Of a stretch of 64,000 nt of DNA, positions 1 through 49,706 are shown piece after piece. Position 1 is the stretch's first letter. Each line of letters begins with the position of its first letter. A program made the position numbers and the translations under genes. This DNA comes from Klebsormidium nitens (lineage: Eukaryota; Plantae; Klebsormidiophyceae): assembly GCA_000708835.1 (NCBI GenBank), contig DF237384.1:14379-78378 (forward strand), written 5' to 3'. The notes under the pieces are model-generated. The model was not told the DNA's origin, did not search any database, and worked only from the letters and a program-made list of their open reading frames with translations.

Positions 1-315
1 CAGGTGGGTCCGTTCGGTACCCGACCGCGCCCGCCTGCATGGAGGGCATCTTCCCAAGCGTTGGGCCCCTCAGCGGGGGAACAAACGTCTCCATCCTAGT
101 TTCGGGGCAGCTCCCGCATGGGCGCTCTAAGCCGCCGGTCTGCGCGTTTGGGTCGCTCAAAATCAACGGCTCCTACTCGCCCGAGACGTCAACAATCAGC
201 TGCACCGCGCCCGCGGCCGCGGCTATCGGCCTGTCACAGCCGGGAACGGTAGCGCTGACGGTCAGCCTCGACGGAAGAACGTTTACGCCCGAGGGGGCGG
301 CTTTTACTTACTACG
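1..315 (+). CDS. Cassette exon 1 (3' part only): IPT/TIG domain
   Basis: ACMEGIFPSVGPLSGGTNV...GQLP-HGRS-KPPVCAFG...ISC...VSLDGRTF...FTYY, ending at the phase-1 donor g|gtgag. Confidence 0.85.
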
Positions 316-3300
316 GTGAGTTCTCCAACGCCGCTCGCCCACGTTTTGCCGCTCAACAAAGAAGCTATATCTTCACGTCTTTGAGCGAACGTACGGACTG
401 ACGACTCACATGACCGTACCCTGCACCCTTGGGAGAATGATTGCGGACGTTTCTCACGAGCTGCCGTGCTATGATCACCGTCCCAAAAATGTGTCCAAAA
501 CCTCCACCCTTGATTCTTTCCGTGTGGTCATGGATTTGCATCAGCTACTTTGGCTTTGTAACCGTCATATGTTTGACCTAACTGAGATCTGAAAAGCCCT
601 GAATCTGAGCGGATCTCTCTTCCCAAGTTGCAAGGAACCCGTCGCTTGTGACGTAGATGAAAAAGAATCCTTCCAAAAGAGAGCGTCTACTTTCACTAAC
701 CGCCGCAAACTTCCGCTCCTGCTCAGCGGACTTCTACCCCCACAACTTCCGAAACGTGCCGCCACCGCCTGACCAGCTGACGACGCCCTTCCAACCGACG
801 ATCCCCTTAGACTCCGCCCCCTTCCCGGGCGCCTTCTCGGACTTCGACCTGGTTGCCACGTCAGCGACCTGCAAGCTGAACGGCCTGGTGACGCCAGCAA
901 TCTACCAGCCTCTGGCGACCGTCTACTATTGGTGGGGTTATGTGCGGGAGCAGCCGACCATAAGCTGCGTCACTAGAGGATCTCCTATGGGCGACCGTAA
1001 CCTGCAAGTCTCGTTGGACGGGCAGCATTACGTCACCGTGACCCCGGCCCTGGACCAGCAAACGGACCTTTACAGTCCTGGCAATTTCGTCACCCGGCCT
1101 GACCCAACTGCCCTTGTGGAGCGCCATTCCGGTCGGGCCAACTTCACCCGGCTGCCAGCGACGTCCCGATACTGCATCGCTTTCCGAACCGGCGCGGCCG
1201 CCGTAGCCGCTCTCGCGGGCCTCACCATCGNNNNNNNNNNNNNNNNNNNNNNNNNNNNNNNNNNNNNNNNNNNNNNNNNNNNNNNNNNNNNNNNNNNNNN
1301 NNNNNNNNNNNNNNNNNNNNNNNNNNNNNNNNNNNNNNNNNNNNNNNNNNNNNNNNNNNNNNNNNNNNNNNNNNGGGCCAACTTCACCCGGCTGCCAGCG
1401 ACGTCCCGATACTGCATCGCTTTCCGAACCGGCGCGGCCGCCGTAGCCGCTCTCGCGGGCCTCACCATCGACACCGGGGATCTGTCCCCGGCATTCGATC
1501 CCAAGGTCTTCAACTACTCGACGACCGCCCCGCCGGGCACTACTGCGGCGAGCCTTGACTTTATTCCGGGCCCAATGTTGTCCTCGGTTAGCATCCAGGG
1601 CGTTCCCGTGGCGCTTGACTGGTCGCGCGGCGCGGCGCGCAACAACGCGCACACTGTGACCCGGTTGACCCCCGGCTGGAACATTATCGCCGTGGAAGTG
1701 ACGGCGCCAAACGGCTTCTCGCTGACGTCATACACGGTGGACGTCTTTGTGGCATCGCCGTGCCCCAAGGGCCACCCAAAAAAGCCGCCCGCGGCCGCGT
1801 GCCTGCTGAGCCTTTCCCCCGACGTGGGCCCGGTGACCGGGGGGACTAGAGTGGCGCTCCAATTCCCGGCCGGTCAACTGCCAGTCTCTGGGAACTGCTG
1901 GTGGTGCTCCCCGAACTACAACCGATTCCAGCCCGCGATCAATGCGAAGAATCCAGTCTGCAACTTCGGCGGGCGCAAGGTGACGGCCGAGTACGAGAAC
2001 TGGAGCAGCACGAGCATTGTTTGCTACGCGCCACCCTGGGATGGGGCGGCCGCAGTGGACGTGACCTTCAGTCTCGACGGCACCACGTTCAGCGCTGCCG
2101 GCGGACGTTTCTTTTACCACGGTGAGTCAATCTCACATCCGCTGATCAGTTTGTCCAAAGATCGAAACCTGTGTTGTCTCCTGTCCGTACATCTGCAAAC
2201 GAACAGGTTTGCCAAGGCAACTGAAGCCACAAAAGGATTTCAATTGTGTGCTGTTCTTGGGAGCTGCGAAGGTAGAATAGTGATGATCTTGCAATCTGAG
2301 CCCGCTGATCAGCAAGCTTCTCTACAAGTGGCTCTTTAAGCTTCATGCATCTGAATCCTTACACCTCTTGGTAACGTAATCTTGCCTTTCAACCGCCGGT
2401 CCTATGCAACGAGTCTAGGTGCTTCAGTTCCCTTTACATCACACTCACTTACGAGGCTCCGCTGTCTGCACTTCGTGTCCCGATGTTTTAGTCCCCAGTC
2501 CTTTAATCTTTCAGCTTCTTCGACTTTCTCACGATCCTTTTCCTTCTGCAGCGCCCTACTCCCCCGGGAACTTGACCACGGCGCCGTCTACATTACGGGT
2601 GGCCACACAGTTCGACGCAATCGTTCCCCTTACTGGACCTTCATTCCCCAGCAGCTACAAGAACTTTGCTGCACTGCCAGCGCAGTGCCGGATCTCCTAT
2701 ATGGGGACCACAGCGGCGCTTTACATTCCGCCCAGCGGAAACTCAACCACGCCGTCCTTGCGGTGCCGGCCGGTTCTCTGGTCGTACATGTCCCCAGGGA
2801 CATATAACCTTGACGTCAGCATTAACGGGTTCGACTTCGTACCCGTCCCCCAGCCCATCACATTTCTCCCCCGGGACTCCTCGGCCAATGAGATGAGCTA
2901 CACGTGGTTTCAAAGCCCCGGCTCCAAGCTGCTGCCGGCAACCGACGCTTACTGCGTCGGTTATGACATCAGCCCGGAAGCGGACAACGCCACGCTCTAC
3001 AACCTAGGCCTCGGACGTTTGGATATGAAACCCGCATACAGCGCCGACGTCCACTTCTACTCCGCGAGCGCGCCCTACGACGCGCGCGTGCTTGAGGTCG
3101 CGGCCGCGCCGGCCGCCGCGGGCGCGACTGTCGTGGTCAACGGGCGCGCCCTGGCTGGCATGTGCGCCAACGGAAAGTTTGGGAACAACGTCATAACGGT
3201 ACCCGTCTTGTATTCGGGGGTGCAGACCTTCACTGTGGAGGTCACAGCCCTCAACGAAATCAACCGAGCCGTTTACACGATCAGCGTCGACGTTGCTCCC

Positions 3301-6300
3301 GAGCCGCCCTCGGTGCCCTGCCCCCGAGGGTATGCTCCCCAGCCGCCAGGCTTCGCTTGTCTGCAGAGCCTCTCCCGGGGCTTTGGACCGACCGCCGGCG
3401 GCACTGGGGTCGTTCTCCGTTTCCCCTGGGGCCAGGCGCCCCCTGCGCTCGGCAACTGGATGTACGGGCAGCAGTCAGCTGGGCCCACCAAGCCCCCGGT
3501 CTGTTCTTTCGGCGACAGCCGGGTGGTTGGGAGCTATTTTGGAGACGGAATCTTCTGTAACGCCCCCGCTTTGGTTGCGGGGTCGGGTTCGCAGACCGTG
3601 CCGGTGACCTTCAGCCTGGACGGGGTCAAATTCAGTACAAGCGGGGCAAACTTTACATACTACTGTAAGTCGAAATCATCCTCTGTCTTGGGAAAGACCT
3701 TTGAAACTTGCTTTTGCCAAAATCCAAGAGTTTGGTTCAAGACAGTTTTGTCATTATGGCTTCCAGCAACAAGGTCCTCTCCTCGCGTTTCATCCCGCTG
3801 ATTTGTCTAGCCTCCAGTCGCTGGTATTTGCTACTTGACATTAAAAGCTACAGAAGCCAGAACTACAGAAGCCTGGCGGGTTCATCATACTTGAGGATAA
3901 GTCTCACCTATTCTGGATGTTTCGACACTTGACTGTGCAGGATCCGACCTTCCAATGGTCTGAAAAAGCTTCTGCAGAAAAAGGCTGGGCTTCAATTAGA
4001 TGATGGAAATTTTTCGACATAGAACGGAACCGACAAGTCTCAAGCATAGAGAAATGATGCGGAGTACGGATGCTCGTCTAGATTTCAACCACGTGCGCAG
4101 CTTGATTACGATGATAACTTACATGTGGCCGAGCTTCCATCGGCTCTTCATGAAAGGAAAATTTGAAGTCACTTCATTTGCGTTCAAAGACAAGATGTGC
4201 AGCAACTCACTCATCTGCCATTGGTAACCTGCAGCTCCTTTCTCGGCGACCTCTTTCGATCCTCCCCTTGGGAGCGTCTCCACAGGTTCCATCTTCGAAG
4301 CGACCATCCTTTTGGACAAGCTCGTATATCTGGACAACGCTGTCGATGCGGCCGCTGTTTCTAGCTCCGCCTCGTGTAATTGCGACGGGGTAACCACGCC
4401 GGCGACCTACCTGCCCCCCGGTGGAAACCGCAGCCAGCCCGCGCTGCGCTGCAATACCATGGCAACCTCGGCCGGAAACCTATACCTCAGGGTCTCTCTA
4501 AACGGGTTCGACTACGTGACGGTGCAAACGCCGATCAACGTGCTGCCTTCCGACGGCGCCTGGCAGTCCCCAAACCGCTACGAGCCGACCGCGGCCGCGC
4601 GCATGCTCGCGCCCGGCCTCTGCGTGGGCTACGCGGCGGGCCCGGGGACCGCCGACGCGTCGCTTCGGGGCCTGGAGCTCTCTCCAGGGGCGACCATGCT
4701 CCCCAGCTTTGCCGGCTCGGTGCTGTTTTACACCGCACAAGTTGGCTGGGACGTCCGTCAGGTGAACTTCACCGTCGTACCAAACGTAGTCGGGGCGACG
4801 GTGTCCATAAACGGCGCGCCGCTCGGCGTTTCCTGCGCGGGCGGCGCGATCGCGGGGAACGTCTTCTCGGCGCCGGTTCTCTTCACCGGCCTCAACCGGT
4901 TCACAATCGTGGTGACGGCACTCAACGGCTTCAGCCAGGCGACGTACCAAGTGGACGTATACGCCGCGGCAGCGCCCGTCGCGGCCGCGTGCCAGCGCCC
5001 GTACGCGGCGCAGCCCGTGACCGCGTGCCTGCGGAGCGTGACCCCGGGGCTGGGCCCCGTTTCGGGGGGCACCCAAGTCCGCCTCCAGTTCCCCCCCAAT
5101 CAACTGCCTCTGGGGCCCGCCACGTGGTACAATCAGTGGACGTTTGGGACGGGTGTCAAGCGGCCTGTATGCCGCTTTGGGGCGCTGACGACCGTCGGAA
5201 CGTACGGCTCAGACGGCGTTTCTATCACGTGCGCCGCGCCCGCATGGCCTGACAAGTTCCGGCCAGAGACGGTGCCGGTGTCATTCAGCCTGGACGGATC
5301 GACATTCGCGGAGCTGGGGGCGACTTACACCTACCACAGTAAGTTTCTTCTTGCACATCAATTTCTTTTTTCGAACATCACTGTCTGGTTGCAAGCTGCG
5401 ATGGTTTCGATCAACATGGCAACTTGAGTACGCACCTCTTTGATGACTGTTCAAATTCAAACGTCAAGCTATGGAAAGCTTTCACATTACTCATTTCGTT
5501 CCCTTGATATCGATTTAGCGACCGTTGAGCAGCTTGCTTGATCCTGGCTTTCAGCCCTTGTAACCCTTCAAATTTGCGCAAAATGATTCATTGCAAAGAC
5601 GAGAAGGAAGGAAGACTTTGGCGCTCCTTTTATGGCTGCGTGTAAACGTTTGTTTGCTATTGAAGTAGGGAGTCGAAACACTCTCAAAATTAAGGAACAA
5701 GAGCTGCATCGCAAGAGGTTCAAAAATTTGCACCTTTCTCTAGACCCAAAACTTCATTCGCTCTCTTGTCGTTGTCCCAGGTGTATTCCAGGCGGGCCCT
5801 GTCCTCGGCCTGCCTTCCCCGGCCTACACTGGGTACCCTCTCCCAGTCGTGGTCCCCCTCACGGGCCTCATCTTCCCGGCCAACTTTTCCACCACCGATC
5901 TCCTCACCACCTCTGCTGAGTGCACTCTCCAAGGAGGCGGAGGACCGGCCGCGACCTACCTCCCCTCACACAACGACTCAACCGGGCCTGCTCTCAGTTG
6001 TACCGTCCTGGTGCCTTGGTATTACCCTGACTTTTACTGGCAAACGTCCTGGACCCTGGCCGTTGCCTCAACGGCCAAGAATTCGTTTCCGTGCAACAAC
6101 CAATCAGCTTCGCGCGTCCCAACGTCACGAAGTACGACGGATGGAACTATCTGAGGTCGTACGTCAACCCGGGTGTGCGGTTACCTGCCTCGCCGGCTGT
6201 GTGCGTCAACTACACCACCGGAGGCGCTTCCATGAGCGCCTCCCTTGCCAACATATCTCTGAACGCCATTCCGCTACTCCCGCCCTTCGATCCTTCCGTC

Positions 6301-9300
6301 CAAGTCTATTCCGCCAACGTCTCGGCGGACGTCTCCCAGGTGAACGTCTCAATCGTCCCCGGCGTTCTGGGCTCGAGTATCAAGGTTAACGGGACGCTTT
6401 TGCAGTACGGCTGTGCAAACGGCACAGACTGCAACAACACCGCAACTCTGCGAATCTCATACGCCGGCCTCAACACTTATGCAATCACCGTTGACTCCCC
6501 GAACGGCCTGAATCAGACGGTCTACCAAATTCTGATCTACTCGGCGCCCGCCACTGACATTTGCCGCCGCCGGCCCTTCCCGCCGCCTGCGCGCACGGCC
6601 GCGTGCATTAACGGCGTCGCAACGTTCGCTGGCCCGACGACCGGGGGAACTAGAGTGGGAGTTCATTACCCCTACGGTCCGCTGCCGTCAGCCAAAGCCG
6701 CTTATTCCTCCGTTGGTATAGCCCGCTTGAAGCCGCCCACGTGCGCCTTTGGTGAGACACTTACTGTCGGATCGTATGCCTGGGAGGGGGATTATATCAC
6801 CTGCTACTCACCCCCTCAAGACGAGCCTAGGACCGTGGAGCTGCGGATCAGCTTCGATGGGAACACCTTTACCGCCTCCGGGCTGACGTTCTCTTACTAC
6901 GGTGAGACAAGCTTCCTTACTCTAGTTGTGCGTAGCTCGCAAATATTGGAGCGTACTCATGTGCTTCCTTCCTTCAACGAATTTACGTTGTTCTAGGAAA
7001 TTTGGACGTCTAAGAAGGAAGCTTCTTACTTGAAACTCGTCTCGTCACTCTGACGATGACTTCAATCAGGGTCACAAAACGCGTCGAGCGGACTGGTCTC
7101 AAATCGTTCCCGTGCTCCGGATCAGCATGCCCATCTGCCTAGAATCAAATATTATGATGGATTTGACCCTACAGGGGTAGGTAGCAAGGTCAAGCTCAGA
7201 TTTACCCTGGGCCGCAGACAGGCCCAAACCAGATTCTGGAGTTCTGCCTAAGTTTTATTTTTCAGCAACTTCGCCCCGAACTCAATTCTGCTTAGCCATA
7301 TTTTGAATTTTGAGTTCTCCGAGGATATTAAATCACCCGGTAGAACCTTGAAAGGACTTAAGCCGTCCACTTGCAAGAAGGAAGTATTGGACGTTTCGGA
7401 ATATTGATTCAGCGTAATATGACCCTTCTTCAATCCAGTCTTAGGAGGACAGAGTGGCGAGCGAATGTTAGCGGCTCCATCTGGACGAGCTGCTGATTCG
7501 GATTCTTGATTCTTTTAATTTCAAAGAATGGCAAAGAAGCATTTGCTTTCTTACCTTGCTGGTACTAGTCTCTGGTTTCAATCGCTCTGCTCCGTCTTCT
7601 TCTCTGTTTTGTAAAATCTCTTACGTTTTGTTGAACGAATCGTAGAAGTTTGCGAGAGATTGTCTTCTTCGAGCCGACCAATCTTGGTTCCTTATGGATC
7701 TATTGCCCACTCTTAGAAACACGCCTTGAAGAGTGCGGCGATTGTTTTGTATGTTGAATCTGTGGCCTCGCACTTTCGACTCGCCGTTCTCATTGCTGTC
7801 ACGCACAGCTTCAACTCTCACTTTATTTCAAATTGGCTGAGCTCTGCGTCACGACAGGTCTTCATAGCCTGCAAAGTCTGAAAAAAAGCAACAACACATC
7901 AGCTTTAGCTTTGCTCTGCTTCACTTCATGCATAGCTCCCCGGCACGATTGCTTCCAACCGTTCAAACTCTGCGCGCAGCGCCCTTCGAGGCCCTGTCGG
8001 TCACCACGGAGCCCGCCGCCCTCTACGTTGGGGCCATCTTCAAGGCGCGCGTCTCTCTGACGGGGCCCGTCTTTGGTCCGGCCTTCACCGACTTCGCCGG
8101 CGCCGACCAAACCGGCCGCTGCCAGATGCCGGGCAGCATCTCCCGGGCTTCTTACGTTCCCGCCAACGGAACCGGCGGACCGCCGTCCCTTTACTGCGAG
8201 GCCCTCGTCCCGTACTACTTCGGCGCCGGGCAGTACTCTCTCCAAGTGTCGCTCAACGAATGGGACTACGTGCCCGTCCCCCAGCCGCTGTCGTTTGCGC
8301 CGTTCAACGCCAGCGGGTCTGGCTATAACCGGCTCCCTAATGCGGGCGTCCGCTGGCAGTCCAATGTTCCGTACAACGAGAGCCTCTGCTTAAGCTACCC
8401 GGTTGGTCCCGACATCGACGACGCGACACTTTCGCAGCTCGCTTGCGATCAAGGGGGCCTTTCCCCGGCCTTCGACCCCAGCGTTTTTGCGTACACTGCA
8501 AGCGTTCCTTCGAACGTCACCCAAGTCTTCCTCACCTTAGCGCCAGCTGTCATCGGGGCGACCATCACCATCAACGGCTCACTGTTGGCGGTCGCCTGCG
8601 CCGACGGATTCCTCGTCAATAGCACGATCACGCTCCCTATCGCTTATGCGGGCGCGAATAACTTCGTGATCGAGGTGACGGCCCTCGACGGGATCCACCG
8701 CGCGCTCTATTCCGTTTCCGTTTTCAGCGCGCCGGAACCGGGGCTTGTAGCGTGCCCCAAAGCGTACGCGTCCCAGCCGCGCTCCGCCTGTATGCAGAGC
8801 ATCGTTCCGGTGGTGGGCCCCATTTCCGGCGGAACAACAGTGACCATCCGCTTCCCCTACAACCAGCTCCCTCTCGGCCCTGTAAACTGGTGGGACTGGT
8901 GGAGCAACTCGAACTACGGCTCCGGTGTGAAAAAGCCCGTGTGTCGCTTTGGGAGGTCACTAGTCACTGGGGCTTATGGAACGGACGGGACTAGCATCAC
9001 GTGCGTGGCACCCCCCTGGGACGAGACTGCTCCGTCGAGGACGGTGGCGCTCTCCTTCAGTCTGGATGGCGTTTCGTTTAGCACTGCTGGAGCCAATTTC
9101 CACTATCACGGTAAGATTGGCTTGTTTCAACCAAAAGCGCTGAATCTACTTGCGTCTGCAAACAATGTACTGTCTTTGATACTCGCTCAATCGCTTCAAA
9201 AGGCTAGGGCAAATGCAGGATCTGCTTCCTTTTCCCTTCAATCTCCGACCTGCTTGCCGCCCCAACTCTTGAGAGGTGGAAGCACTGTAGACCCAAGTCC

Positions 9301-12300
9301 ATAAATACCTTGATCACAGGGTGCGTGCTTTGTTGCTGCCTTCAGGACGATTCAAGCCGCTTCACCTTACCATTTTTAGCCACCTTTCAACTGAGAATTG
9401 TTTAACGTTTGTTCCGGATGCAGAAAGAGATGACGACTCCAGTCGCTTCCCGCTGATTCTTGTGTATCTCTGCCTTCAGTTCCCTTCACAGCCGCGGCTG
9501 TTACGGCTCCCCGCGTGCCAGTCAGCCTCGGCTCCCTCTTCGAGGCCCTTGTTCCGCTGGACAACGCGCCGTTTGCAGCGGACTTCACCGACTACGCCGG
9601 AATTTCCGCCACGGCGACCTGCGACATCCAGGCCTACCCGCGAATGCCCGCCGTCCTCATTCCCCCTGGTCCCAACCAAACCCTCCCAGTCTTCCGCTGC
9701 GTGGGCAACTCTCAGTTGGGGATTGAAGTCGGAACCTACAACCTGCACATCTCCCTGACCGGCCAGGATTCCGTAACCGTTCGCAAACCGATCGTTTTCT
9801 CGGCGCCCGGTGGCCCGCCCGTCGGCGACACCGGCTTCTATGCAAACGCGCAGCCGCGGCCGCTCCCGCCCTCGCCCGGGTTCTGCGTCAGCTACCTGGT
9901 GGGCGCTACGTCAGCCAACGTCAGCCTGTCCGCTCTCGCATTTTCGGAGGGCCTGTTCCCTGCCTTCGACCCGGGGCTCCGCAGCTACTCTTCCCGAGTC
10001 GCCTTTAACGTCACCGAGGTGACCATCATCGTGCTTCCGAGTGTGGTCGGGGGAAGCGTGAGCGTCAACGGACGGCCTCTGGGCGTCACTTGCGTCAACA
10101 AGACGATTGCCCACAACGTGTTTACGGCTGCCGTTCCTTACGCAGGGAACAACAGGTTTACGGTTGAGGTCACGGCCCCCGACGGCATCAACCGGGCGGC
10201 TTATACCATAGACGTATACGCGGATCTTGCCCCCGTGCCGGCGGTCTGCCAAAAGCCGTACGCGCCGCAGTTTACCACCGCGTGTTTGCAGAAGATTTAC
10301 CCAGGGGTTGGGCCCACGACCGGGGGAACCCTGGTCCAGCTTCAGTTTTCCTCGGGCTCTTTCTCCTACCTGTACTCCGTGCCTACCGTTTACTCGCCCG
10401 GGGACTGGCAATGGCGGCAACTGTGGACGGTGAAGCAACCGGTGTGCGCCTTCGGCAATCAAACGGTCCCGGGGACGCTTAATGGCGACTCTGCGGTGAC
10501 TTGCACGAGTCCCCCCGCGGCAAACGGAGCCCCGGAAACGGTAGCGCTGACGTTCAGCCTTGACGGACGGACCTTCTCTTCAACAGGCGCCACGTTCACA
10601 TACCACAGTAAGTGAAAGCCCCGTGTTTTCTTGTGCAATTTGAAAACGATACTCTGCCCATTTTTCGTTCCAGCTTCAAAGTGTTTGTGATAAGCGTTTC
10701 CAGTTCGACAGTAAATCAAAGAATAGACGAGCTAACCTGTCAATATATATTCTTGCTGTCAATTCCGCCAATAATAGCTTCTCAACGTCTAAGTTTTTCT
10801 CTGAAAAGTTGCCGGCTGTTGTTTCGCGAACTGACGTCCCCAAGGTTTTATGTTGCACAAAAAGTGTGAATCAAAATGTCCAACTTTGTTCAACCAGCAC
10901 TCAATTTGAATCATCTCGTGCAGCCCCCTATCAAGCGGTTGGGTTCGACGGGCTACCATCAACCCTCTACCTCGGGAAAGCGTATCAAGTCCACATCCGC
11001 CTCCAAGGACTCTTGCTCCCCGACGCATTCACCAACTTTGACCTCATCTCCCTGACTACCATGTGCCAATTCGAGGGCATGCGGACCGGCGCCGCGTTCC
11101 TCCCAGGCGACGGGAATGGCAGCGACCCCATGGTGTCCTGCGCTTTTTTGGCGCCCGGTTACTTCCAGCCCGGCCCACACAGCCTGAGCCTCTCCCTCAC
11201 CGGGCAGGACTTTGCGACGGTGCTCCAGTCCCTTGTTCTCACCACTCCAAACGACACCTCCTCTTACTACTACTGGTGGTCGTATCTCCCCGGGCCGTAT
11301 TACAACCAAGGCCTCCAGCTTCCTTCCTCCGCGGGCTATTGCGTCTCCTATTCCTCAGCGCCGGACGCCCTAAACGCAAGCCTGACTAGTCTGGATCTAG
11401 GCGGAGTCGCTCTCTCGCCCCCGTTCAGCCCCAGCATACTCCAATACACAGCATCAGTGACGTCAGCCCTGGACGCTGTAAACGTCACCCTACTCCCCGC
11501 CGCGCTTGGCGCGCGCGTGCGTGCGAGCGGCGGGGTCCTGGAGCCCGACTGCGCAAGCGGCGCGCCGGGTGGTAACGCCCTCGTCTTTCCGGTGCAGTAC
11601 GTCGGAAAGAATAACCTGACCATCGAAGTGACGTCAGCCAGCGGCCTCTCACAAGCGGTGTACTACGTCAACGTATACGCGGCGCCCGCCGATCGCACGT
11701 GCCAGGTCAAACCGTATGCCCCGAGCGTCCCGCGAAGCGCGTGCCTGCAGAGCATCTTTCCGTCGTCGGGGCCCGCTTCCGGCAGAACGCGCGTCACTTT
11801 CAACTTCCCCTGCGGTCAGCTCCCGAGTAACATGGGCCGGGACGGCTTTTGGGATGTGAAGCTGCCCATATGCTCCTTCGGCGGTCGGCAGGTTACGGGG
11901 ATGTACGACTGGGGCTGGGGCTGTTCTCTTTGGTGCTCGTCTCCAGCTTGGGATCAAAACGCTTCGGCGGAGAGCGTGGAGGTGACGTTTAGCTTTAATG
12001 GGGGCCGTACGTTTAGCAAAGCCGGGGCCATCTTCTCATATTACAGTGAGTATCTGCAAATGCATCAAGGATCTAGAGCTGCACCTTCGTCGCCAACACA
12101 AAGGTCATGGTTTGCAGCGTTCACTGACGATGGTGACGATGTTGTTGCCCGAATCGGACTTCCCCTGTGACTGGTAAACTGGAGCTTCCAAGACTGCCGC
12201 TGCGTGCAGACTTGCCTGCATCTGAGGCCTTTCTTTTCATATCAGCAACCTTATAGAAGGTTATACTTCTTGGATGTTTATAAGATACTCAAGAGGTCTG

Positions 12301-15300
12301 CTGTTGCAGTTGCCAATGGTACATTCTTCTGATTAACAATCATATCGAGTTGTCTCAAGCTTTCTCCTTCGCTTAAGCCAATGAGATTGCAATTTAATTC
12401 TGGCTTGCAGGTTTTTCTCAGATGCATGAGTTGTGAACTGCTCTTTAATTCGTCTTATGTCCTCCTTTTTGGGGTTGCAGTGCATTGAGGCCTAACAGAC
12501 TTTCTGAACTTCCAGACACTTCCAGACTTCTGAAGATGCTAGCTTGAGCATTCAGGTGTGCCGCCAAACCAACAATCCTTGCTCGTTTCGCTCTTACAAC
12601 GCTTGACTCGTCTTTGCAGTTCCCTTCAACCCCACCTTGAGCAGCGTCCCTGACGCGATCGTACTGGGCACGACTTTCTACATCGAGGTCTCCCTGAGCG
12701 GGCCCGTCTTTGGCGCCAACTTCACTGGTTACGACGCCTTCGCCCCCGCCTGCCGCCTGCCAAACTTGTGGGGCCTGGTCGTGCCCGCCACCTTCATCAC
12801 CAATGGAACCACCCCGGCTCTGGGCTGCACCCTGGCAACCCAGTATTACATGAACCCCGGCTCATTCATACTGGAGGTTTCTCTAAATGGGTACGACTTT
12901 GTGGCCTGCCCAGAGCGGCTAAATATAGTTCCCTCTAACAACACCAACTGGAACTACAATTGGGTGCCCGGCTGGCAGTCCCCGCCCGCGCTGCCGAGTG
13001 CCCCGGGCCGGTGCGTACCGTTCGTGGGCGATCCGGAGAATGTGGACGCGAGTCTGCTAAGCATAGTGGTGGGGAACGAGACGGTCCCAAACCCGGTGCG
13101 CATTTTCCCCATGTTCTTCCAGGCGGATTACATGCAGAGCAGCGCGTACTTCGGAACGGTCCCTGCGGCTGCGGATGAGATCATGCTCACGGCAGTGCCG
13201 GCCATAGCCGGCGTTAATGTGACGCTAGACGGCGTTCCTTTGGCGCTGTCTTGCGAGAATGGAGAGCTCGCGGGCAACTCGATATCGGCGGCCATCCCTC
13301 ATTCCGGCCTCAACTGGTTCCGTTTCTATGTCACCGCCCTGGACGGAATCCACGAGCTCGGCTACCGCCTCGACATCTTTGCTGAGCCGCCGCTGGGACC
13401 GGGGTCGTGCCCGCGGCCCTACAAGCTGACGTCACAAACCAGCTGCCTCCAACGGCTTTCGCCTCTGGTCGGACCTGTGGCGGGGGGCACCCAGGTCTTT
13501 GTGGGCTTGTCTGGCGGTCTGCCCTCGTTCGCAGCCAACTATTACTGGGGCTGGGGCTCCGACTCCGGTTCTCAATTCAAGCCGCCCGTCTGTAGATTTG
13601 GCTCCCAAGCAGTGAACGGAACGTACACTCAGGGGTGTTCCTCTGGCTGGTGCGGGGGGGGCGTTCTGTGCGACACTCCCGCAGTGAAAGCCCCGATGGG
13701 CGGGCAAACTGTGCCGGTCACGATCAGCTTCGACGGAGCAACTTTCACCGCAAGGAATGCTACTTTCACGTATTATGGTAAGGAGTCAATCTTTGTCCGG
13801 TTCTTTTTCTGCTGTGTTCTGCTAAGCTCAAGCTTCGACTTTGTTTTATCAACAAGCTTGGATCGGTATGCGAAAAATTTGCAGAAGAACAAATTTTTCG
13901 TACGAACCCAACATGCTAAGAAGTTCTCTGAAAAACAGGTCATGATGTCACTGCAGCTTTGGTGGACCAGGAACTCTGTTTGTGTCAATTGGATCGTCAA
14001 AATCAGACCTTCTGTTTCAAGTCTCAAGATGAACTCAAAACTAGTTTCTTTCTGCCAAGAGCAAGAGATCCACCCATGTTGTCCTAGCACAAGTCCACGA
14101 ACCTCATATGGGAGATAAGCAGACAAAGAGCAGAGTACCTCCGCCATCTCCACGCCAAAAAGCCTGGCAATACTTGTTATTCAAGTGCTTGTTTCATTTT
14201 CTGTCTTGCAGCCCCGTTCACGGCGCGGGCCGTCACCAATCTTTCAAGCCCGCCCTGTATTGGGGTCCCCTTCGAAGCCGTCGTTCCCTTGGACGGCCTA
14301 CTTTTCCCGCCCGATTTCACCTACTCCGACCTCCTCCGGGGCTCCAGTTCCCCGGCTTCTTGTGACCTGGAAGGCACCCTAAGCGTTGCCGAGTATTGGC
14401 CCCCGACCGCACACCAAATCAAACCCGAGATTCGGTGCACCACCATGGCACAATCGTGGCTGTCCCCCGGTCCGCACACCCTCCGGGTCTCTCTTAACGG
14501 GCGGGACTACGTGGCAGTCCAGACGCCGCTGAGTTTCAGCGCGGCAAACGAAAGCGTTAACGGGTGGGTTCCCGGTCCGTCCTGGTACCAGAACGGGCTG
14601 CAGCTCGACTCCAGTGATCCGGGTTACTGTTTAAGCTACCTCTCGGGACCGGGAAGCGCCAACACCACGCTCGCGAGCGTGTCCCTGGCGCCCGCAAACC
14701 TGACGTCCGATTTCACCCCGGACGTCCGCAACTATGCGGCACGTGTTTCCTGGGACGTGAGCCAGGTGGCGATCCGCGTGGCAGCCAGCGTGGTGGGCGC
14801 GGCCGTTCGCATCAACGGGAGCCCGGTTGACGTCCGCTGTTCAAACCGGACCCTGTCCAACAACACCTTTCCCGCTCCGATCCTGTTCACCGGAACAAAC
14901 GCTTTCACCATAGAAGTCACGGCTCCCAACAGAATCAGCCGGAGCCTCTACACTCTTAACATTGAGTCGGACCCGGCGCCAGTCCCCGGGCCCTGCCAGA
15001 AGCCGTACGCGCCGCAGATCACGACTGCCTGCCTTCAGCAAATCTTCCCGGGCGTCGGCCCCGCGCGCGGCGGCACGCAAGTCCGCCTCCAGTTCCCATA
15101 CGGTCAGCTTCCTCTGGGCTATCCAAACTGGTGGAACTGGGGATCGTACGGAACGGACGCAAAGCTTCCGCTTTGCGCGTTTGGTGACTTGGTTGTCAAT
15201 GGCTCGTACGGGTATGACGGGACCAGTATCGTGTGCCCCTCCCCCGCATGGCCCGCGTCCGAGCCCCCCGAAACGGTGGCCGTGAGCTTCAGCCTGGACG

Positions 15301-18300
15301 GGGCCGTCTTCTCAACTCTGGGCGCTACCTTCACTTACTATGGTGAGCGCTTGGATGATGGATCTCAAAACTTAGATTGCCGTTGAAAGCAAAAAAGATG
15401 GCCGGACAAATGAATCTGCCTTCCTCTACCTTCACTGGATTGGAACGGTTTGACCGTCATTCAGTAGACTTTAATGTGAACTCATACCGTCAGTATTGAC
15501 GGACTCCTCGCTCCAGATTTCGGAGCAGGTCTTAATCGTGTTGGCAATTGGGGCGTCTTTTCAGTGCAGTCGAGATCATTAGTTTGAAATTCTCGGGACT
15601 TGTAGACGTTCTCCCCAGTGATGAGTCCCGCTTCCTTCAACTTTTCTGTTTTAGTCAGATTCTTTTTAGAAGCATGTCATGCGTTGAAGTACCGCAATCT
15701 CTAAGTTCCAATTCCGCTCTTGCAATCCTCTGAATATTCTTCTCTGCAGCCCCCTTTGCGCCAGGCACTGTGACCGGTCTCCCTCCCACTCTCTACACCG
15801 GAGCAGCCTACCAGGCGTCTATTCCCCTCGGCAAAACGGTTTTTCCGACGGACTTCACCGACTATGACTTGGTCGGCCTATCAGCCACTTGCAACCTTGA
15901 CGGCACAACCTCGGCCGCCCAGATCCTCCCGGAAGTTTTCTCCGACGGCAGCCTGGCCCTGAGCTGCACCGTCTTTGCCCCCTGGTACTATCAACCGGGG
16001 CCCCACACCCTGCAAGTGTCGCTCGACGGCATGAACTATTCGCCCTTGCCGGCTCCTATTTTTTTCACCGCCCCCAATGAGACCACTTACGGCTGGCCTT
16101 ACTACCGAACCCCGAATTGGAACCAGGGCAGGCAGCTGTACGGCCCGGGGTATTGTACCGGGTACCGAACCGGGCCCACCGCAGCGGACTCTTCCCTGGG
16201 TACGCTTGCCGTCGACCAGGGGGCCCTTCTCCCGGACTTCAACCCGGCCACCCGGGCATATGCAATCAACGTGACGGCTGACGTCACGGAGATCAATCTT
16301 ACTCTGCTGCCGGGCGCGCCGCGCGGCGCGGTCGTGGAGGTGAACGGAGTTCCGGTCAACATCAGCTGCGCCGGGAACGAGACGGCCGGAAACGTCTTCT
16401 CAGCAGCGGTCCATTATGTTGGACTGAACGCTTTTGTGATCACCGTCACTGCCCCTGACAACATTCATCAAACGGCTTACCGCCTGGACGTATACGCTGC
16501 GCGCGCAGGCAACGTGTGCGCAGAGCGCGCCTACGCCCCCGCCGCGCGTGCGGCCGCGTGCATGCAGGGCGTCGCTCCGAGCCTGGGCCCTGTGACAGGT
16601 GGCACACGCGTGGCCGTTCATTTCCCATACGGGCAGCTTCCGCTGGGCAGCTTCCGCGGTTATTGGGAGCAGTGGGCGAGTTTTGGCGCTAAAGCGCGGC
16701 GGCCGGTCTGCACGTTCGGCGACCAGAGAGTGGAGGGATCATATGGGACAGAGGGCACGACGATCCTTTGCGTGTCGCCGCCTCTGGAGGACCAGTCCCA
16801 GCCGGTCACTGTGGACCTGACGTTCAGCTTAGACGGGAGGGTCTTCACCCGTACCGGAGCAACGTTCACGTATTACGGTGAGCTGCAGCAGCGAGCCCGC
16901 CCTGTGTTGCCAAAGCAACCTCTTTGACCGACAGCTTGTACTTTCTGACGACATCAGAACAATCTGCCCTTTACAAAATTGGTTCTGCCTAGCGTAAAGA
17001 AGCGATTTCAAACTCTAAGCCTCCAAAGCGGGTACCTACTAACAACAATTGCCAGTAGGATTGGGCAAGGAACTGACAAAGCGCTGCTTAGAGCTCATCG
17101 ATCAGTTCCTCAGCTATGTTTGGTGGAGCTGCCTAGTTGCATCTTATTGTCGCCTTAACATGCTTTTTATTCCTCTTTCTTCCTTCTTTTTCCTCCTCCC
17201 TTGCATTACAGAACAAAGTGTCCGCCTTAATGCCTATCGTCATTGCGAGCCTGTCTTTTTGTGCAGCCAACTTCCAGCCTGCCATGGTGGCCGCCCTTCC
17301 CTCCAGCGTCGCCGTGAGTGATCTCGTCACGGCGGTCATCCCCTTGCCTTCGCCACTGTTCGACGCCACCTTCAGTGACTTCGCTCGGGTCAACTCCTCC
17401 GCGGCCTGCCTCCTCCAGCCGGGCTCCACTTCCGCCGCGGCGTACTTTTCGCCGGACTCCGCCCACGACACCCCGACCCTCCGCTGCCTCCTCAAGCTCT
17501 GGATGGGCCCCCAACCGGGACAGTGCGCGCTCCAGGTCGCCCTTAACGGTCAGGACTACACACCGGTGCTACAGCCGCTCATGTTCAGCGTCTGGACCGG
17601 AAACTCGGAGAACTGGTGGCAGAGGCCGCCCGCTCCCGGAAATCAGGTCTGGCCCCTTCCTGCGGCGAGCACCGACCCGTGCATTTCGTACGAAATTGGG
17701 GCCCCGTTCATTGACGCTACTTTAGCTAACCTAACCCTGGTGGCCGGAGTCTGGCTCTCTCCAGACTTCCAAGCGGATGTGCTGAGCTACTCCATAAGCG
17801 TTCCCTCCACGGTTAACGAAGTGACCCTCACGGTTACGCCTAACGTGGTCGGTCAGACCGTCCTCATCAACGGTGCGGAGCTCTTTGCGACCTGCGCAAA
17901 CGGCAGCTTAGTGGGTAACGTCTTCAAGGCGGCGACCCCTTATATTGCAACCAACAACATAACAATCGAAGTGGTCGCCCAGAACGGCATCCATCGGTAT
18001 CTATACACCGTTCTAGTGCAATCTCAGCCGTCCAACTCCCCGGCACTCTGCCAGAAGGATTCTGCGCCGTCCGTTGGCAGCGCCTGTCTGCAAAGCATAT
18101 TCCCCAAAGCAGGCCCAGTGGGCGGAGGGACACGCGTCGTGCTCCGATTCCCCCAGGGGCAGCTGCCATTAGCTGCGGGCAGCTATGGCTATTCCTGGTA
18201 TACCGCGGCTTCCACCGTTAAGAATCCGGTATGCGCTTTCGGGGGGCAGAAAGTGCAGGGATACTACGGGGGAGACGGCAGTACAATCTACTGCAACGCG

Positions 18301-21300
18301 CCGGCGTGGGATCCCACAACAGGGGCAAGGACCGTGCCTGTGTGGTTCAGCTTTGATGGGTCCAGCTTCACGATCTACGGACCAAAGTACACCTACTATG
18401 GTAAGTTTCCGACTTTCTTTCAAAACTTCAAGTCAGCTTGCCTGAGTTTCCTTCCATCTCATCCAAAAAGACGCCTGACCGAGAGGCTTTAAGCATCTCT
18501 TTGTGATCCACGAAGAGTTCTCGAGCTTCTTCAAAAAGTCCTGGGTTCCCTTACAATCTGGTCAAACCGTATACTCCTTCGCTGCCGGTGTGCTTTCGCA
18601 GCGCTCCATCTCCCTATTCTTCACACTGTAGGTTCGGAACCAGAGAGACTCCTACCAGGGCACCAACACGTGATCTTTTCATCCCCCGTTATTGATCTCT
18701 TGACAACAGAAAAGAAGCGCGCACTCAATGTGCTCTGTGACGAGGCGTCAAGTCTGACTGTCTCAGTGCGCTTGATGCTTCATAAGCACTGCCAGTAGTC
18801 GCCCCTACCGACCTGCGGAACACGCCTCTTTTTTCCTTCTGCAGACGCGGTCACAGTAACCGGGGCAGCCACCGTTCCCGCGTCGCCCACCATCGCTTCG
18901 TACTTCACTGCAACAGTGACCTTGTCGGGCGATCTCTCCCCTGAGGATCCCTCAACGTTGTCACCCGCCTGCCGTTTCCTGGGTTATCAGTACCCGGCTA
19001 CAGTCTCCCCCGCCGTATTGAATGGCAGTGCCCCAACTCTCCGCTGCGTTTGCGTTGCCTGGCCCTATTATCCACCGAGTGAATTTGATCTCGAAGTCTC
19101 GTTGAACGGCCAAGACTTCGTCCTAGCGCCAAGTCCGGTCAGCTTGGGGCCCCAACTGCCCGATTCTTCCTGGTCCGGCTTCAACATGCCCACAGTCTTC
19201 CCCCAAGACGTCCCCGGGCACTATCCCCCGGGGGTCTGCCTGACGTACCGCTCGGGGTTGGGGGCGGCCAATGCAACCCTGGCATCCCTCTCCCTAGATT
19301 CTGGTTACCTGAACCCGGCCTTCAATCCGGGCCAGACCTACTACTGGACGAGCCTCCCAACCGACGTCGCGGAGGTAACCCTTGCTTTCGAACCGGGCAC
19401 TAAGGGGGCGACCGTCACGGCTAACGGGACTCCGATTAGCGCAACCTGTGCGGAGGGAGCAGTCGCCAACAACACGTTCCCTGTCTCCATTTCTCATTCC
19501 GCGCCCACGCAAGTGTCTGTTGTGGTTCTTGCGCCAGACGGGATTTCGGAGAGGGTTTACTACGTCACCATATATTCTGAGGTGTGGAGCACCCCGGGGG
19601 GCCAACCCGGGATGGGCCCCTACCCCTCTCCAATGGACCCCTTTGCCCCGCCGGCGATGAGTCCCCCAACCCCGTTTTCTGGCCCGGCGAGGGTGTACGT
19701 GCGCTCTTATGGGCCGGGGCTAAGCTCGTATGGAGGTGAGGCCACAATCGACTTGCAAAGAGGGCCTGAAGCCGGGCAAGGGTTTCCATACAGCACTGTC
19801 TCAAGTCCTGCTTTTATCAGCTTCTGTCGCTTTTGGATTCGGCTGCAGCCGAGCTTGCGCCCGGCCGCTTGCAACTTAATTTGGATCCGAATTGGTCAAG
19901 TACGGACCGAAAAACATTCGTACAGGTTCCCTCTTTGAAGTAGCTAGAAAGTCTCCTCAAGAAATCCATCGGAAGTTGAAGGGAATTTAAGTTCTCTTGT
20001 CCATATTCAATGTGCAAGAATTCTTGTGTCACCAGAACCCTTCTCTCGGCTCCTATTTTGAGAGAACATGAAGAAATCACGTTCTCTTGAGAGACCTTCT
20101 TTGCAATTAGAACCTTTCAGTCCTTACAGTTTGCGCGCCGTGCTTTGCAGGTGGCATCAAGCTTTCCGTTGTGCTGGAACGCCCGGCTGGAGAGATGGCC
20201 CCACACGCCGAGGGCTGGTATTACTGCCAGTTCGATTCGGTCGTGGTCTTTGCGGACAGCTTCCAAGACAACCCGTCGGTGCCTAACGTGTGGACAGTGA
20301 CGTTTGTGGTGCCGCCCTTGCCGCGGGGGAACATGGTGGCGAAGCTGGCCATCAGCGAGGACGGGTTCAACTTCCAGGATTTCGGAGTGTTCCAGTATCA
20401 TGGTGAGGGCGTCCCCTAGAGTCGAGCACTGACCATCTCGTCAAATGATGTTGAAGTGAGTTCCAGAAAGCCAGCGTCGAAGACTCCTCCGGCCTGTGCA
20501 CTGCCCGGTGCCCCCTGTCTGATCTCCTGTTTGCTTTGCCTTCCGAGCCAAGTCGAACGCTTGGTTTGCAAAAGCCGTTTAGAAATTTCAGAGCAACTTG
20601 CGTAACCCTCTAGTAGGACCGACTGGCACTTGCTTACGGCACGACCCACTCTTATCCCTGAGCGGATCATTCCATCGCTCTGCAGAGCCCCTCCACATCG
20701 CCTCTTTTGCGCCGGCTATGGGTTCGACCGCCGGGAGAAGGGAAGTCCAATTCTCGGTCGCCAGCAGCCTCCTCATCTACTCCTCTGCCACGGCCGAGCG
20801 TTTACAACCCGCGTGCAAGTTTGGCAACATCACAGTGCCCGGGACCTTCCATCAACCGTATGCCTCTGAGGATTCGAGTCCTCACATCAGTTGTGTCGGC
20901 CCCGCTTCCCAGCCCGGATTTGCACGGCTTGCGGTGTCGCTCAATGGCCAGGAGTGGGCACCGGTTACCGGCAGGTATCACTTTGTTCAGATGCTTGAAG
21001 ACCCGGACATGCCCGGCCGGTGCTTCTACGGCCACGAGTTTTATGACGACTGCGGTAAGGCTCCTACTGGGGAATCCGTTCTTCCTTCAAAGATTGTCTT
21101 TGCTCCGATCTATCTTTATCGGATTGCAATCGGCCGCAAGGTTTAAGCTTTTGAAGAAGAGCGTTCTTTACCGTTTGGTTATGCAATGCTTTTTTTGGCA
21201 CCAGTCAAAATTCGATCCAACAACTTAGCTTTCAACCTGCTTCCATCTCAGATGTCACCTGCTAGAGAACGGTGCCGGGTTGCTATGATTGCACTGGGCC

Positions 21301-24300
21301 ATATCTTGTCCTTAATCCCCTGAACATCAAGATTGAAGCATCCGTTTGAAAATAGACAGGCCGCTTTGTGACCGATTCGTGTAGCATGATGAGAAAGGAT
21401 AGCTCTCTTGGGGCTCTCAAACAACAGCTAAGCAGTGCTTAGGGATTATGCAGGGTACCCGGAAGAGTTCCCACCCGGTCCACCTACCAGCTTCCCTCCG
21501 GCACAGGGGCCGAGCCAAAGCCCTTCTATCTGTCTGGATGAACGGAGTAAGCGAAGTCAATGAACTCTCTCTCTTTTCAGCATTCATACTGACTTGCGTT
21601 TGTCAAATTTTTCTTTCGAAGAAATAGCACGCCAGAGGCAGTAGAGTTGCCTGAAGATGCTCAGGCATCCAATAAGATTCAAAGTGTGGATCTTGTCTCC
21701 CAACTGCCCAACCTGTTCGGCGTGTCTCCTCTCCACTCCCGGTTCTCAGTCACACCGAAAGGTGTATCAAAGAGCATTCACCGTGTTTTGTGTTCGGTCG
21801 TCATCAGAGGTTTACAGCGATATTATCATAGTATGACTGAGCAATTTTCTCTGTTTTTCCAGACTCTCCCTACCCTTGCTTCGAGGGGGCACCCGCCATG
21901 GCTCCGAGACCCCAGGCTTTTGCCTCCGCGCCAGCCCCCGGGCCACCCTTTACCTTCCTCCCCCCGCCAGGTTTCAATGGAACCCTGAGCGAACCCCTGA
22001 CTGTCGTGGAGGTTTTGCCGGCCGCGGCGGGCGCCTATCTCCAGCTCATCTGTACCGCGCCGGATGGGCAGCCAACGGTCGGCGCGCTCTTCGCGGCCGC
22101 GTTGACCAGCTTCCCCGAGGGCGACGCGCCCGCACAGCCGCTCTTCGTGTCGTACCCGGCGGATCTGCCCGGGGACTACGCCATCGACGTATCGGTGCGC
22201 TCTGGCGGCGTTTACAGCTTCAGCGTCTACCGGTGCTTCGCGCCGGCCTGCGAAGATGTGCAAACCGGGGCGCTTAGCTCACCGGTGGCCGTCTTCCAAG
22301 GCAGCTTTTCCGTCGTTCCGGGTCCGCTCAGCCACAACATGACAACGGCATCTCTGGCGTCGGGTGCTTATGCCGGGGCGGCCGTCAACATCACCATAAG
22401 GGCCCGGGATGCAAACGGCTTATTGCGAACGCAGGGCGGCGACAGCACCCACTTTGCGGCACGCATCGAGCCGGCTGTGGCGTGGCCGCCCAATGTGACG
22501 GACCATGGAGACGGGACGTATCTCGTCAGCTTTGTGCCGGTTCTCGTTGGAGAACACACTGTCACGTTGTTGATTGTGAGTAGCTGCGAACTGGTTTCTC
22601 GCGACACACATTCTGAATTGCTTTGAGAAGCACGTTCCTTAATCTTTGCTGAGCGGATCATTGGGTTGGCTAAGGTCTGCAACTGCCTTTCTTCATTCGA
22701 TACATGAAGAAAAGTGCTGCAAGTGAAGTGGACCCCGAACGGGAGAACCGTTATAGCTTTGACTCTCATGAGAGCCATGTCTCGAGATTTTGCACATCAA
22801 GAGTTTCCAGGCCTCACTCAAGCTCAAGCTTGAAGCCTATTGCAATATTCACTTGTTGGTTTGAGTTCTTAGTTCGTGGGGAGCTAGCGGACACTTATCT
22901 CTACCTCTGACTGTCAGTCCTTCCTTTCATCTGCCAGAGTTCACACTTAAAATCGGAGGCTCGTCTTGAAGAGCCGTCTTAGAGCGGACCGGTCATCGCC
23001 CTGATAAAGATACTACTTATGCGTGTCGGTTTATCCCTGCTTGGAGCGCTTTACTGGACAAGCATCACCTTTTTGCGCTCTCACTTTTCCCCTACCAAAT
23101 CACATCCAGACTGGGTTGTTATACCGTCTTTTACACTCCATCATGCGACTTCTAAGGAGGCAGAAAGCTTGCTGAGGTGCAATTTCATTGTCCGCAGGAC
23201 GAGGAGCCTTTCGCGTTTTTCAAGTTCGACACCCTCCTCGACTCCCGCGACGCTGCCAAGTTCTTCCTGGCGGGCCCCCGCACCGCGGCCGCGGGGCAAA
23301 ACCTGACCTTCTCGGTCCGCCCACTCTTCGACCACTACTTGACCGTCAACTCGTTCTCTATCAACGTCACCAGCACGAATTCACTCAAGGCCGTAGCCTC
23401 GTTGGACGACGCCTCATGCCGCGATGGAACAGCGCGCGCGTCGGTGGACTGCGTCTTCACCTTGAACGCAACGCAGTCGGGGACTTATGCCGTCAGCGTA
23501 TACTTGAGCTCGGAAGAGGTGACCAGCAGCCCGGCTAGCTTCGTGATACTACCGGGGCCCCCCTCGGTTCTGCGCTCGTCAGTGACCGGTTCGGCGCAGG
23601 CGGCTGCGGGCGACGCGGCCGCGTATGCGGTCCGCCTTATGGACTTTTTCGGAAACGCAATCACCGCGGACGTCGTCCTCGAGTTTTCCGGCCCAACTCC
23701 GGCGTCCGTTCCGCAGCTGATTCCGGCGGCATACAACGGAAGCCAAGCGGTGTACACAGCGAAGGCGTTCCTGTCCGCCCGGGGCAGCTACAACATCACT
23801 GCAAAAGCTGTGGTTGCTGCCGACAACGGTGGCGGCAGCCTAGGCGTTTCCTCGCTTCCCTTCGGTCAGCCGCTGATCGTTAAGCCGGGGCCGCTCAACG
23901 CAACGCGCGTCAGGGAGTCGCTCCAGGGGCCCGCCCTGCAGGACGCGGCCGCGGGCGCGCCGCTCTCCATCATAGCGTATCCCCTTGACGCATACAATAA
24001 CCCGCTGGGCCCGACGGAAACTGGCGGCGTGGCAATGCGTGTGATCGTCCGCAACGGAAGTGACGTCACGTTGGTGGATCAGGCACTAAGCTGGGCGGAC
24101 GGCGATACTGTCCTGAAGGGGGGCCGGATTTTTTTGACCGCGGCCGGTGCTTATAACGTCTCCGTTGTTCTAAGCATCGGCGACAGCCCCTCGAGTCTGG
24201 TGTACAACAAGTCCATTACGGTCACGGCGGCGGAGTGGGTCTTGGCCCAGACGCGAGTGTTTGGACTCGCGAGCGTGAGGGCCGGAGACCTTGGCACCTT

Positions 24301-49100: not shown

Positions 49101-49706
49101 ACAGCAATGATCATCACCGAAGATGGCCTTCACATTTTGAAAGCGCATTCGAAGATGGGGACTGCAGCAGAGATGTTTGTGTAACTCGTGCGAACACCGT
49201 TTAGGAGAGGTGATGTGTACTAGTTGCAAAAGCGGTGTTCTTGGCTGGAAAGGCATGTCTCAAAGTGATTGCGGGCTGCCTCAATTCATCACCAATTATT
49301 TTCAGACAGCTGTGCAACCCATGCTTCAGCAGGGCACTGAACATACCTCCCACATATGGCGCAGGCGGACCAAACCCGCCGCTGGGGCCAAACCCGCCAC
49401 TGGGGCTGGCCCCAGGGTACCCCCCTGCGGCGGGCTGTGCACTTTTGGCCGGTGCAATGCTGATGACGGTGCTGCAAACCACACACCTGCACACAGGTGG
49501 CCAAAACAATGCATAATTCGGGGGGATTGCAATGCACCACAAGCAGCGGAGGGTTCAAGTGAACATCCTGCCACCAGCTAATGACATGAACTGAGTGCAC
49601 ACCATAGCCTGGATGCTGGGGGCATTCCTTACTGTATTTTTTGTGCTCCAGGCGGCAGCTGAAGAGTCGTCCGGCACTTGGGGCAATCAATCAGATAACT
49701 CGCCAT
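46162..49706 (-). CDS. MC1: Type I metacaspase with LSD1-type zinc finger and Pro/Gly-rich prodomain, 428 aa
   Basis: Exons (-): 49706-49633, 49486-49347, 49009-48761, 48517-48434, 48204-48094, 47777-47740, 47541-47368, 47073-46948, 46452-46162. CPKC-x14-CVVC finger; KKRAVVCGISY..LKGCINDAQCM; FHYSGHG (catalytic His); DGFDETICPVD; DACHSGT (catalytic Cys); SGCED.QTSADT; GAMTYSFIQAIE. Confidence 0.95.

Follow-up and report, generated by a model that had tools for sequence, protein, structure and literature searches.

An array of eleven three-domain cassette exons with conserved tryptophan-rich insertions in a predicted giant surface protein gene of Klebsormidium nitens

Introduction

Giant repeat proteins dominate algal cell surfaces, and few of them have a known function. 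A contig of the alga Klebsormidium nitens (DF237384.1 of assembly GCA_000708835.1) carries a gene in which large exon cassettes encoding immunoglobulin-like (Ig-like) folds are repeated in tandem, each with its own short tryptophan-rich loop. We have analyzed 64,000 nucleotides (nt) of this contig, positions 14,379 to 78,378 of the forward strand; this whole stretch is referred to as the window, and all positions given are window positions. The question raised by this locus is whether the loops form a repertoire of alternative recognition sites, as was proposed in a preliminary description of the sequence, or are constitutive parts of a single surface protein. We find that the array is a natural experiment, with eleven copies of one three-domain scaffold, each with its own conserved Trp-rich insertion. 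The insertions are under purifying selection, and we lean toward the reading that they are sticky patches of a multivalent adhesin or glycocalyx protein. Should the modules turn out to bind different ligands, the array would be an example of how multi-specific surface recognition can be encoded in an alga without recourse to somatic diversification; with a shared ligand, it would provide a well-defined new module architecture for adhesins. We also supply a gene model and correct the assembly, removing a spurious gap and flagging a frameshift.

Organization of the cassette array

Twelve segments of the form GPxxGGT, loop, and K-x-P-x-C are present on the + strand of window 1-18400, and the loop strings listed in the preliminary description are found in them exactly. 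That description counted at least 12 cassettes, which holds for the loop-bearing segments; the full cassettes number 11, of 367-385 amino acids (aa) each, and occupy 727-18400 on the + strand. The remaining segment lies in a phase 1-1 exon at 4-315 (+ strand) that encodes an IPT/TIG domain with a short unelaborated loop, HGRS, at nt 117-128. In the orthologous locus of a related alga, what lies upstream of the exon matching 4-315 is not the first two domains of a cassette but more TIG-only exons and long exons encoding PF12733 repeats; we therefore regard 4-315 as a TIG-only exon and the number of full cassettes as 11.

Each cassette is a single exon with AG and GTRAG borders and phase 1-1, as checked for all 11. 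The 5′ border is a pyrimidine-rich AG acceptor, with the exon opening two bases before a conserved (A/V)-P-F, and at the 3′ border a Y-[YH] plus one base is followed by the GTRAG donor. The cassette 1 exon (727-2121, loop 1884-1946) contains a spurious gap at 1231-1374 and a duplicate at 1375-1470, such that its true length is 1155 nt. It is followed by cassette 2 (2552-3664, 1113 nt, loop 3442-3489), cassette 3 (4235-5338, 1104 nt, loop 5110-5157), and cassette 4 (5781-6901, 1121 nt), which has an aromatic-poor loop at 6688-6729 and a 1-nt deletion at 6063/6064. The array continues with cassette 5 (7980-9110, 1131 nt, loop 8873-8929), which was modeled with AlphaFold2, cassette 6 (9480-10607, 1128 nt, loop 10367-10432), cassette 7 (10924-12045, 1122 nt, loop 11826-11858), and cassette 8 (12620-13777, 1158 nt, loop 13525-13578), and ends with cassette 9 (14212-15342, 1131 nt, loop 15114-15161), cassette 10 (15750-16877, 1128 nt, loop 16643-16696), and cassette 11 (17267-18400, 1134 nt, loop 18169-18219). 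With the gap in cassette 1 collapsed, every cassette exon except that of cassette 4 has a length divisible by three and no stop codon.

We aligned 17 cassettes, taken from both the window and the ortholog. Cys is conserved at eight positions, seven of them invariant and one occupied by Cys in at least 90% of the rows; these and the framework motifs of the preliminary description all appear in the consensus.

Domain composition and fold

The order of domains in a module is an Ig-like domain (D1), a Cadherin-like domain (D2, PF12733), and an IPT/TIG domain (D3, PF01833). PF12733 was matched in all eight frames tested, at 37.8-51.7 bits (gathering cut-off 24.2). PF01833 was matched in cassette 5 at 34.2 bits (cut-off 20.9); elsewhere, four cassettes scored 13-20 bits and three frames had no TIG match, this weakness outside cassette 5 reflecting the insertion that splits the domain. 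AlphaFold2 modeled cassette 5 as three beta domains with a mean predicted local distance difference test score (pLDDT) of 69.6 and values below 50 at residues 110-145, which form the D1-D2 linker, and at 301-310, inside the variable loop. D3 is modeled with seven strands across residues 273-375. When the whole cassette 5 model was compared with the PDB using Foldseek, plexin IPT strings were the best matches, and among AFDB clusters the best were IPT/TIG and Cadherin-like proteins; TM-scores in the cassette search are low, an effect of using three flexibly joined domains as a single query. The two Pfam families and the plexin matches agree with the earlier assignment of the cassettes to Ig folds. 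The ESM Atlas returned generic TIG, DUF5018, and Cadherin-like clusters only, all with scores below 0.85.

No Pfam family was matched by D1. Modeled alone, it forms an Ig-like sandwich with a pLDDT of 85.9, and its Foldseek matches in the PDB are weak (all E ≥ 2e-3) and include filamin, ICAM, and the TIG domain of CAMTA1 (TM-score 0.69 by target). A profile comparison of D1 with D3 was also weak (E = 0.005, probability 7%), but it brought the Cys and S-L-N-G motifs of the two domains into register. D1 is probably a degenerate TIG domain.

Two aromatic segments in each module

In the cassette 5 model, strand B of the TIG domain spans residues 286-290 and strand C residues 320-323. The variable segment is located between the two and is therefore an insertion in the B-C loop, with a length of 11-22 aa across the 11 cassettes. 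The preliminary description singled it out as the outstanding variable segment. It is among the two most diverged 23-column windows; the other is the linker between D1 and D2 (23-37 aa; e.g. 8300-8400 in cassette 5), which is equally diverged and had been missed. Over its 23 columns the loop has a mean pairwise identity of 16.6% among the 11 paralogs, as opposed to 35.6% overall, and the linker, with 16.3% identity and the highest indel rate, is the sole other region as low.

Both segments are lineage-specific and rich in Trp, Tyr, Gly, Ser, and Asn, and one pair of them is present in each module. Trp accounts for 11.2% of loop residues and 5.4% of linker residues versus 0.9% of the framework (a 12-fold difference for the loop; Fisher p = 9e-15), and Trp and Tyr together account for 19.7%, 13.7%, and 5.2%, respectively, in keeping with the initial impression of aromatic-rich loops. 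The loops had also been said to change completely from cassette to cassette. Their low identity fits this, but they can be aligned, and share a central aromatic pair in nine of the 11 cassettes and, in several, a core of the LG-P-x-N-W-W type. An N-x-S/T sequon is present at the start of the linker in 6 of the 11 cassettes.

Other giant TIG-repeat proteins recovered in a profile search have a spacer between GPxxGGT and Cys that is uniformly ~15 aa long with 0-0.7% Trp, and the spacer in the cassettes is roughly twice this length; the elaboration of the B-C loop is therefore lineage-specific. Loops of this kind correspond to what have been termed N-loops in the algal protein FUS1, which lie at the N-terminal pole of an Ig-like domain and face the preceding domain (PMC13601591).

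Relatives and selection

Among 5.8 billion clustered proteins, close relatives were found only from two contigs of one public run, representing the related alga. The two contigs align collinearly with window 1-28853 (79-89% identical at the nucleotide level), and all 11 cassettes are one-to-one orthologous between the two species, with synonymous divergence (dS) of ~0.36. In a maximum-likelihood tree each of the eight cassettes included pairs with its own ortholog (support 100/100), and paralogous cassettes are only 29-45% identical. These comparisons indicate that the duplications are old and that there has been no turnover, gain, loss, or gene conversion since the two species split. A search with the cassette 5 protein gave one close relative, with the other matches being to the common PF12733 only, and no relatives of cassette 5 were found in prokaryote genome contigs or in metagenome contigs. 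In a profile search of 1.84 billion proteins, long PF12733-repeat proteins dominate the top matches, and full-length matches to the D1-PF12733-TIG arrangement were only to proteins from the related alga's contigs.

The loop-versus-framework comparison across species that the preliminary description had proposed as a check was made with these two species only. The framework (3812 codons) has dS 0.356, nonsynonymous divergence (dN) 0.076, and a dN/dS ratio (omega) of 0.215, and the B-C loops (186 codons) have dS 0.50, dN 0.150, and omega 0.30. Loop dN is thus twice that of the framework, a value not attained in any of 2000 size-matched framework resamples. Framework omega is 0.12-0.35 per cassette in all cassettes. 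Orthologous loops are 75% identical, and 26 of 30 aromatic positions in the loops of the eight cassettes compared are still aromatic in the ortholog. Judging from these alignments, both aromatic segments evolve at about twice the framework rate, yet are under purifying selection with their aromatic residues kept between species. For the loops this follows from the omega of 0.30, and is the opposite of what an arms-race repertoire would predict. The proposal of hypervariable, CDR-like (complementarity-determining region-like) loops in a germline repertoire thus does not agree with the loop omega and identity, the retention of aromatic residues, and the one-to-one orthology.

There is a weak period-3 super-repeat within 727-18400, in which cassettes 1, 4, 7, and 10 group together (support 79/89). 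Cassettes 3, 6, and 9 are mutual closest paralogs, at 43-45% identity.

Assembly gap, cassette 4 frameshift, and splicing

The sequences at 1135-1230 and 1375-1470 are identical over 96 nt and flank the gap at 1231-1374 in cassette 1. Independent Logan contigs, from two runs of the source sample, pass straight from 1134 to 1375 and so omit 240 nt, and the same join is present in a contig from a related organism; in the orthologous contig the duplicated 96-nt sequence is present once only. The gap is spurious and represents an unmerged 96-nt overlap, and 240 nt are to be dropped from the assembly. The gap and duplicate amount to 240 nt, so the reading frame is kept either way, and the collapsed cassette 1 of 1155 nt is open.

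Comparison with the intact ortholog shows that one base is missing from cassette 4 between 6063 and 6064; if this cassette is included, translation would reach a stop ~29 codons after the deletion, near 6151. Three source-sample contig sets match the window across 6063/6064 with zero differences, although they derive from one sample at a word depth of ~11-19 and are not independent of the assembly, such that a systematic error is possible. Long-standing decay or relaxed selection is not seen in cassette 4, with a framework omega of 0.22, and its exon is symmetric, so skipping it would preserve the frame.

More generally, the phase 1-1 exons permit any subset of cassettes to be skipped in frame, with cassette 4 carrying its 1-nt deletion. 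The 12 introns are 316-1078 nt long, and docking- or selector-like elements are not apparent among them, as neither k-mers shared between introns nor complementary 11-13-mers exceed what is seen in shuffled controls. Among the runs listed there is no RNA run that contains the gene.

Comparison with known proteins

The domains themselves are already known, as are giant Ig-repeat surface proteins, both in algae (FMG1B) and elsewhere. The presence of the triple module in one exon, and the combination of a Trp-rich B-C insertion with an aromatic linker, appear to be undescribed, and a literature search on algal TIG, Cadherin-like, filamin, and REJ proteins gave nothing specific.

Strings of IPT/TIG domains in plexin, Met, and fibrocystin resemble the cassettes in that D3 belongs to the IPT/TIG family and the whole cassette finds its best structural match in plexin IPT strings, and fibrocystin also has a very long TIG-containing ectodomain with one transmembrane helix and a short tail. 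They differ in that the TIG domains here alternate with Cadherin-like domains and carry the Trp-rich B-C insertion. The PF12733-repeat proteins, which are mostly bacterial surface proteins and include a top match named gliding-motility-associated-like protein, share D2, but repeat PF12733 alone, whereas in the profile search the triple module was matched in full length only by the related alga.

FMG1B of Chlamydomonas (PDB 9gos) is a giant membrane-anchored ciliary coat glycoprotein with dozens of Ig-like repeats; these are of low identity in sequence, sharing a conserved core while their peripheral loops vary (PMC12021028). It is likewise a giant membrane-anchored algal surface protein of Ig-like repeats, and ranks 33 among the Foldseek matches as a generic Ig-like fold match; its repeats, however, are single 'beta chunk' units and its anchor is a multi-helix transmembrane one (PMC12021028), as opposed to the triple module and one transmembrane helix seen here. 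Homology with FMG1B at the sequence level was rejected, as the cassette profile did not recover 9gos from all PDB sequences at E values up to 1.

FUS1 is an algal gamete adhesin whose ligand groove is made up of an aromatic pocket and the B-C N-loops located where Ig domains meet (PMC13601591). FUS1 and GEX2 share filamin-like Ig domains and a single transmembrane helix with the present gene, and Ig_GEX2_N (PF23616) is matched at 48.9 bits (cut-off 27) in the frame at 29952-32213, beneath a stronger Filamin match. FUS1 has seven Ig-like domains (PMC13601591), whereas this gene is many times larger and of a very different architecture, and its cassette array has no GEX2 match.

As in Dscam-type genes, Ig-like units that differ in their loops are encoded by exons in tandem, with symmetric phase 1-1 exons in this case. 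Unlike those genes, a whole three-domain module rather than an alternative half-domain is encoded per exon, selector and docking elements were not found in the introns, and there is no diversifying selection. A member of the polycystin-1/REJ family would be expected to have a GPS/GAIN site followed by a multi-pass (11-transmembrane) region with PLAT, rather than the single transmembrane helix and 26-aa tail that end this gene.

Interpretation of the array

We propose that the gene encodes a single, very large type-I membrane glycoprotein with the array in its middle; every module would be a constitutive part of it, and together the modules would make up a long rod. Given its place at the N-terminal pole of the TIG domain, the B-C loop would face the junction with D2, and the linker would lie at the D1-D2 junction, such that the aromatic segments would form a row of ~22 similar but non-identical sticky patches. 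Through CH-pi stacking, these patches could bind glycans or polymers of the wall and matrix; alternatively, they could drive lateral self-association of a coat. Trp is the residue most enriched in carbohydrate-binding sites. Composition, purifying selection, and the analogy with the junction grooves of FUS1 and the coat formed by FMG1B are the reasons that we consider such a multivalent adhesin or glycocalyx protein somewhat probable. Several points weigh against it. Binding and a surface location are predicted, and transcription and constitutive splicing are assumed, given that no RNA run with the gene is listed. Both aromatic segments have pLDDT values below 50, so the model does not distinguish an exposed from a packed arrangement. 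Finally, cassette 4 is frameshifted in this strain, and a full-length protein needs its exon to be skipped, or else the gene is broken. A more elaborate version, which we regard as doubtful, is that the 11 modules are lectin-like or partner-recognition units of differing specificity, such that a fixed 'barcode' of ~22 aromatic patches on one molecule reads the glycan or wall surfaces of mates, symbionts, substrates, or microbes. In-frame skipping, as of cassette 4, could vary this barcode, and it would be without a described algal counterpart.

The same segments could instead be structural, packing across domain junctions, possibly against an N-glycan at the linker-start sequon, and so stiffening the rod, with the differences between cassettes arising because packing tolerates many sequences. 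We take this to be possible, if on the whole unlikely. The B-C topology and the linker position both place the segments at inter-domain junctions, and the sequon in 6 of 11 linkers, the central aromatic pair in 9 of 11 loops, and the purifying selection on the loops are all consistent with such a role. However, AlphaFold2 gives no confident packed conformation for either segment, the length ranges are unusual for a fixed interface, and other TIG giants form rods without insertions of this kind. The preliminary description proposed that the array is a germline repertoire of distinct binding sites. These would serve to recognize self and non-self, pathogens, mates, or symbionts, and the symmetric exons could in addition be chosen combinatorially, as in Dscam. 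Every loop is indeed distinct and sits on an Ig-like fold of a surface protein, skipping of any subset of exons would keep the frame, dN in the loops is double that of the framework, and a frameshift in cassette 4 would be harmless if that cassette were skipped. The loop omega of 0.30, on the other hand, is that of purifying selection, the strict one-to-one orthology of 11 of 11 cassettes leaves no gain, loss, or conversion, the paralogs are old, shared or complementary intron elements do not exceed shuffled controls, and the runs listed include no RNA run with the gene. We consider a repertoire of this type improbable.

Last, the array might be part of a pseudogene that is decaying in this strain and has no current function. 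The cassette 4 deletion and its premature stop, seen in all three source-sample contig sets, would fit this, as would the lack of an RNA run containing the gene among those listed. Against it, the other ten cassettes are open, every cassette has a framework omega of 0.12-0.35, with cassette 4 itself at 0.22, and cassette 4 of the ortholog is intact; the deletion, moreover, is subject to the limits of the contig sets noted above and could be bypassed by in-frame exon skipping. Loss of function is thus very unlikely.

The rest of the gene

The gene spans more than 45 kb of the window, to ~45124, and continues upstream of it. The exon region that follows cassette 11 is the thirteenth (18845-19935, + strand, donor unmapped) and encodes D1 and the Cadherin-like domain in the same exon without TIG; a separate TIG exon is located downstream near 20680-21105. 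Filamin/ABP280-type Ig repeats (PF00630, up to 149 bits, with Ig_GEX2_N cross-matches) extend over 21841-37069 on the + strand, with exon borders unmapped. A Ser/Pro-rich stretch of 324 aa at 26132-27103 (+ strand) lies between filamin repeats. Ser and Pro together make up 75% of it, with repeats of the (SP)n type, and it is similar to the shafts seen in hydroxyproline-rich glycoproteins of green algae. At 38028-40192 (+ strand) the REJ domain is matched twice below threshold (16.7 and 22.1 bits versus a gathering score of 25), a hint of a juxtamembrane region like that of polycystin-1. No GPS, PLAT, or PKD-channel match was found in the frames scanned, with exons between 40 and 43 kb incompletely modeled, nor were Sema, PSI, G8, or PbH1 domains found in the frames scanned.

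The last open frame (43226-45124, + strand) encodes 632 aa with three internal repeats and no Pfam family. It contains a transmembrane helix at 44966-45043, followed by a 26-aa basic tail and a stop codon at 45122-45124, and a protein search with this last exon gave only the ortholog (85% identity) and a paralog, P0158 (43%), both unnamed. From the single transmembrane helix and short tail at the gene end, the product is predicted to be a type-I membrane protein with a very large ectodomain, and the very long stalk envisaged in the preliminary description accords with a giant extracellular protein of this form. The N-terminus and signal peptide lie outside the window. In the ortholog contig, the region upstream of that matching the window (2558-6930) has open frames of 858 aa and 448 aa with several Cadherin-like repeats and further Trp-rich stretches, and these are followed by the short-loop TIG-only exons; the gene therefore reaches well upstream of the window. 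Past the stop codon of the gene, window 46000-64000 contains open frames on both strands, two of which were tested and have no Pfam match.

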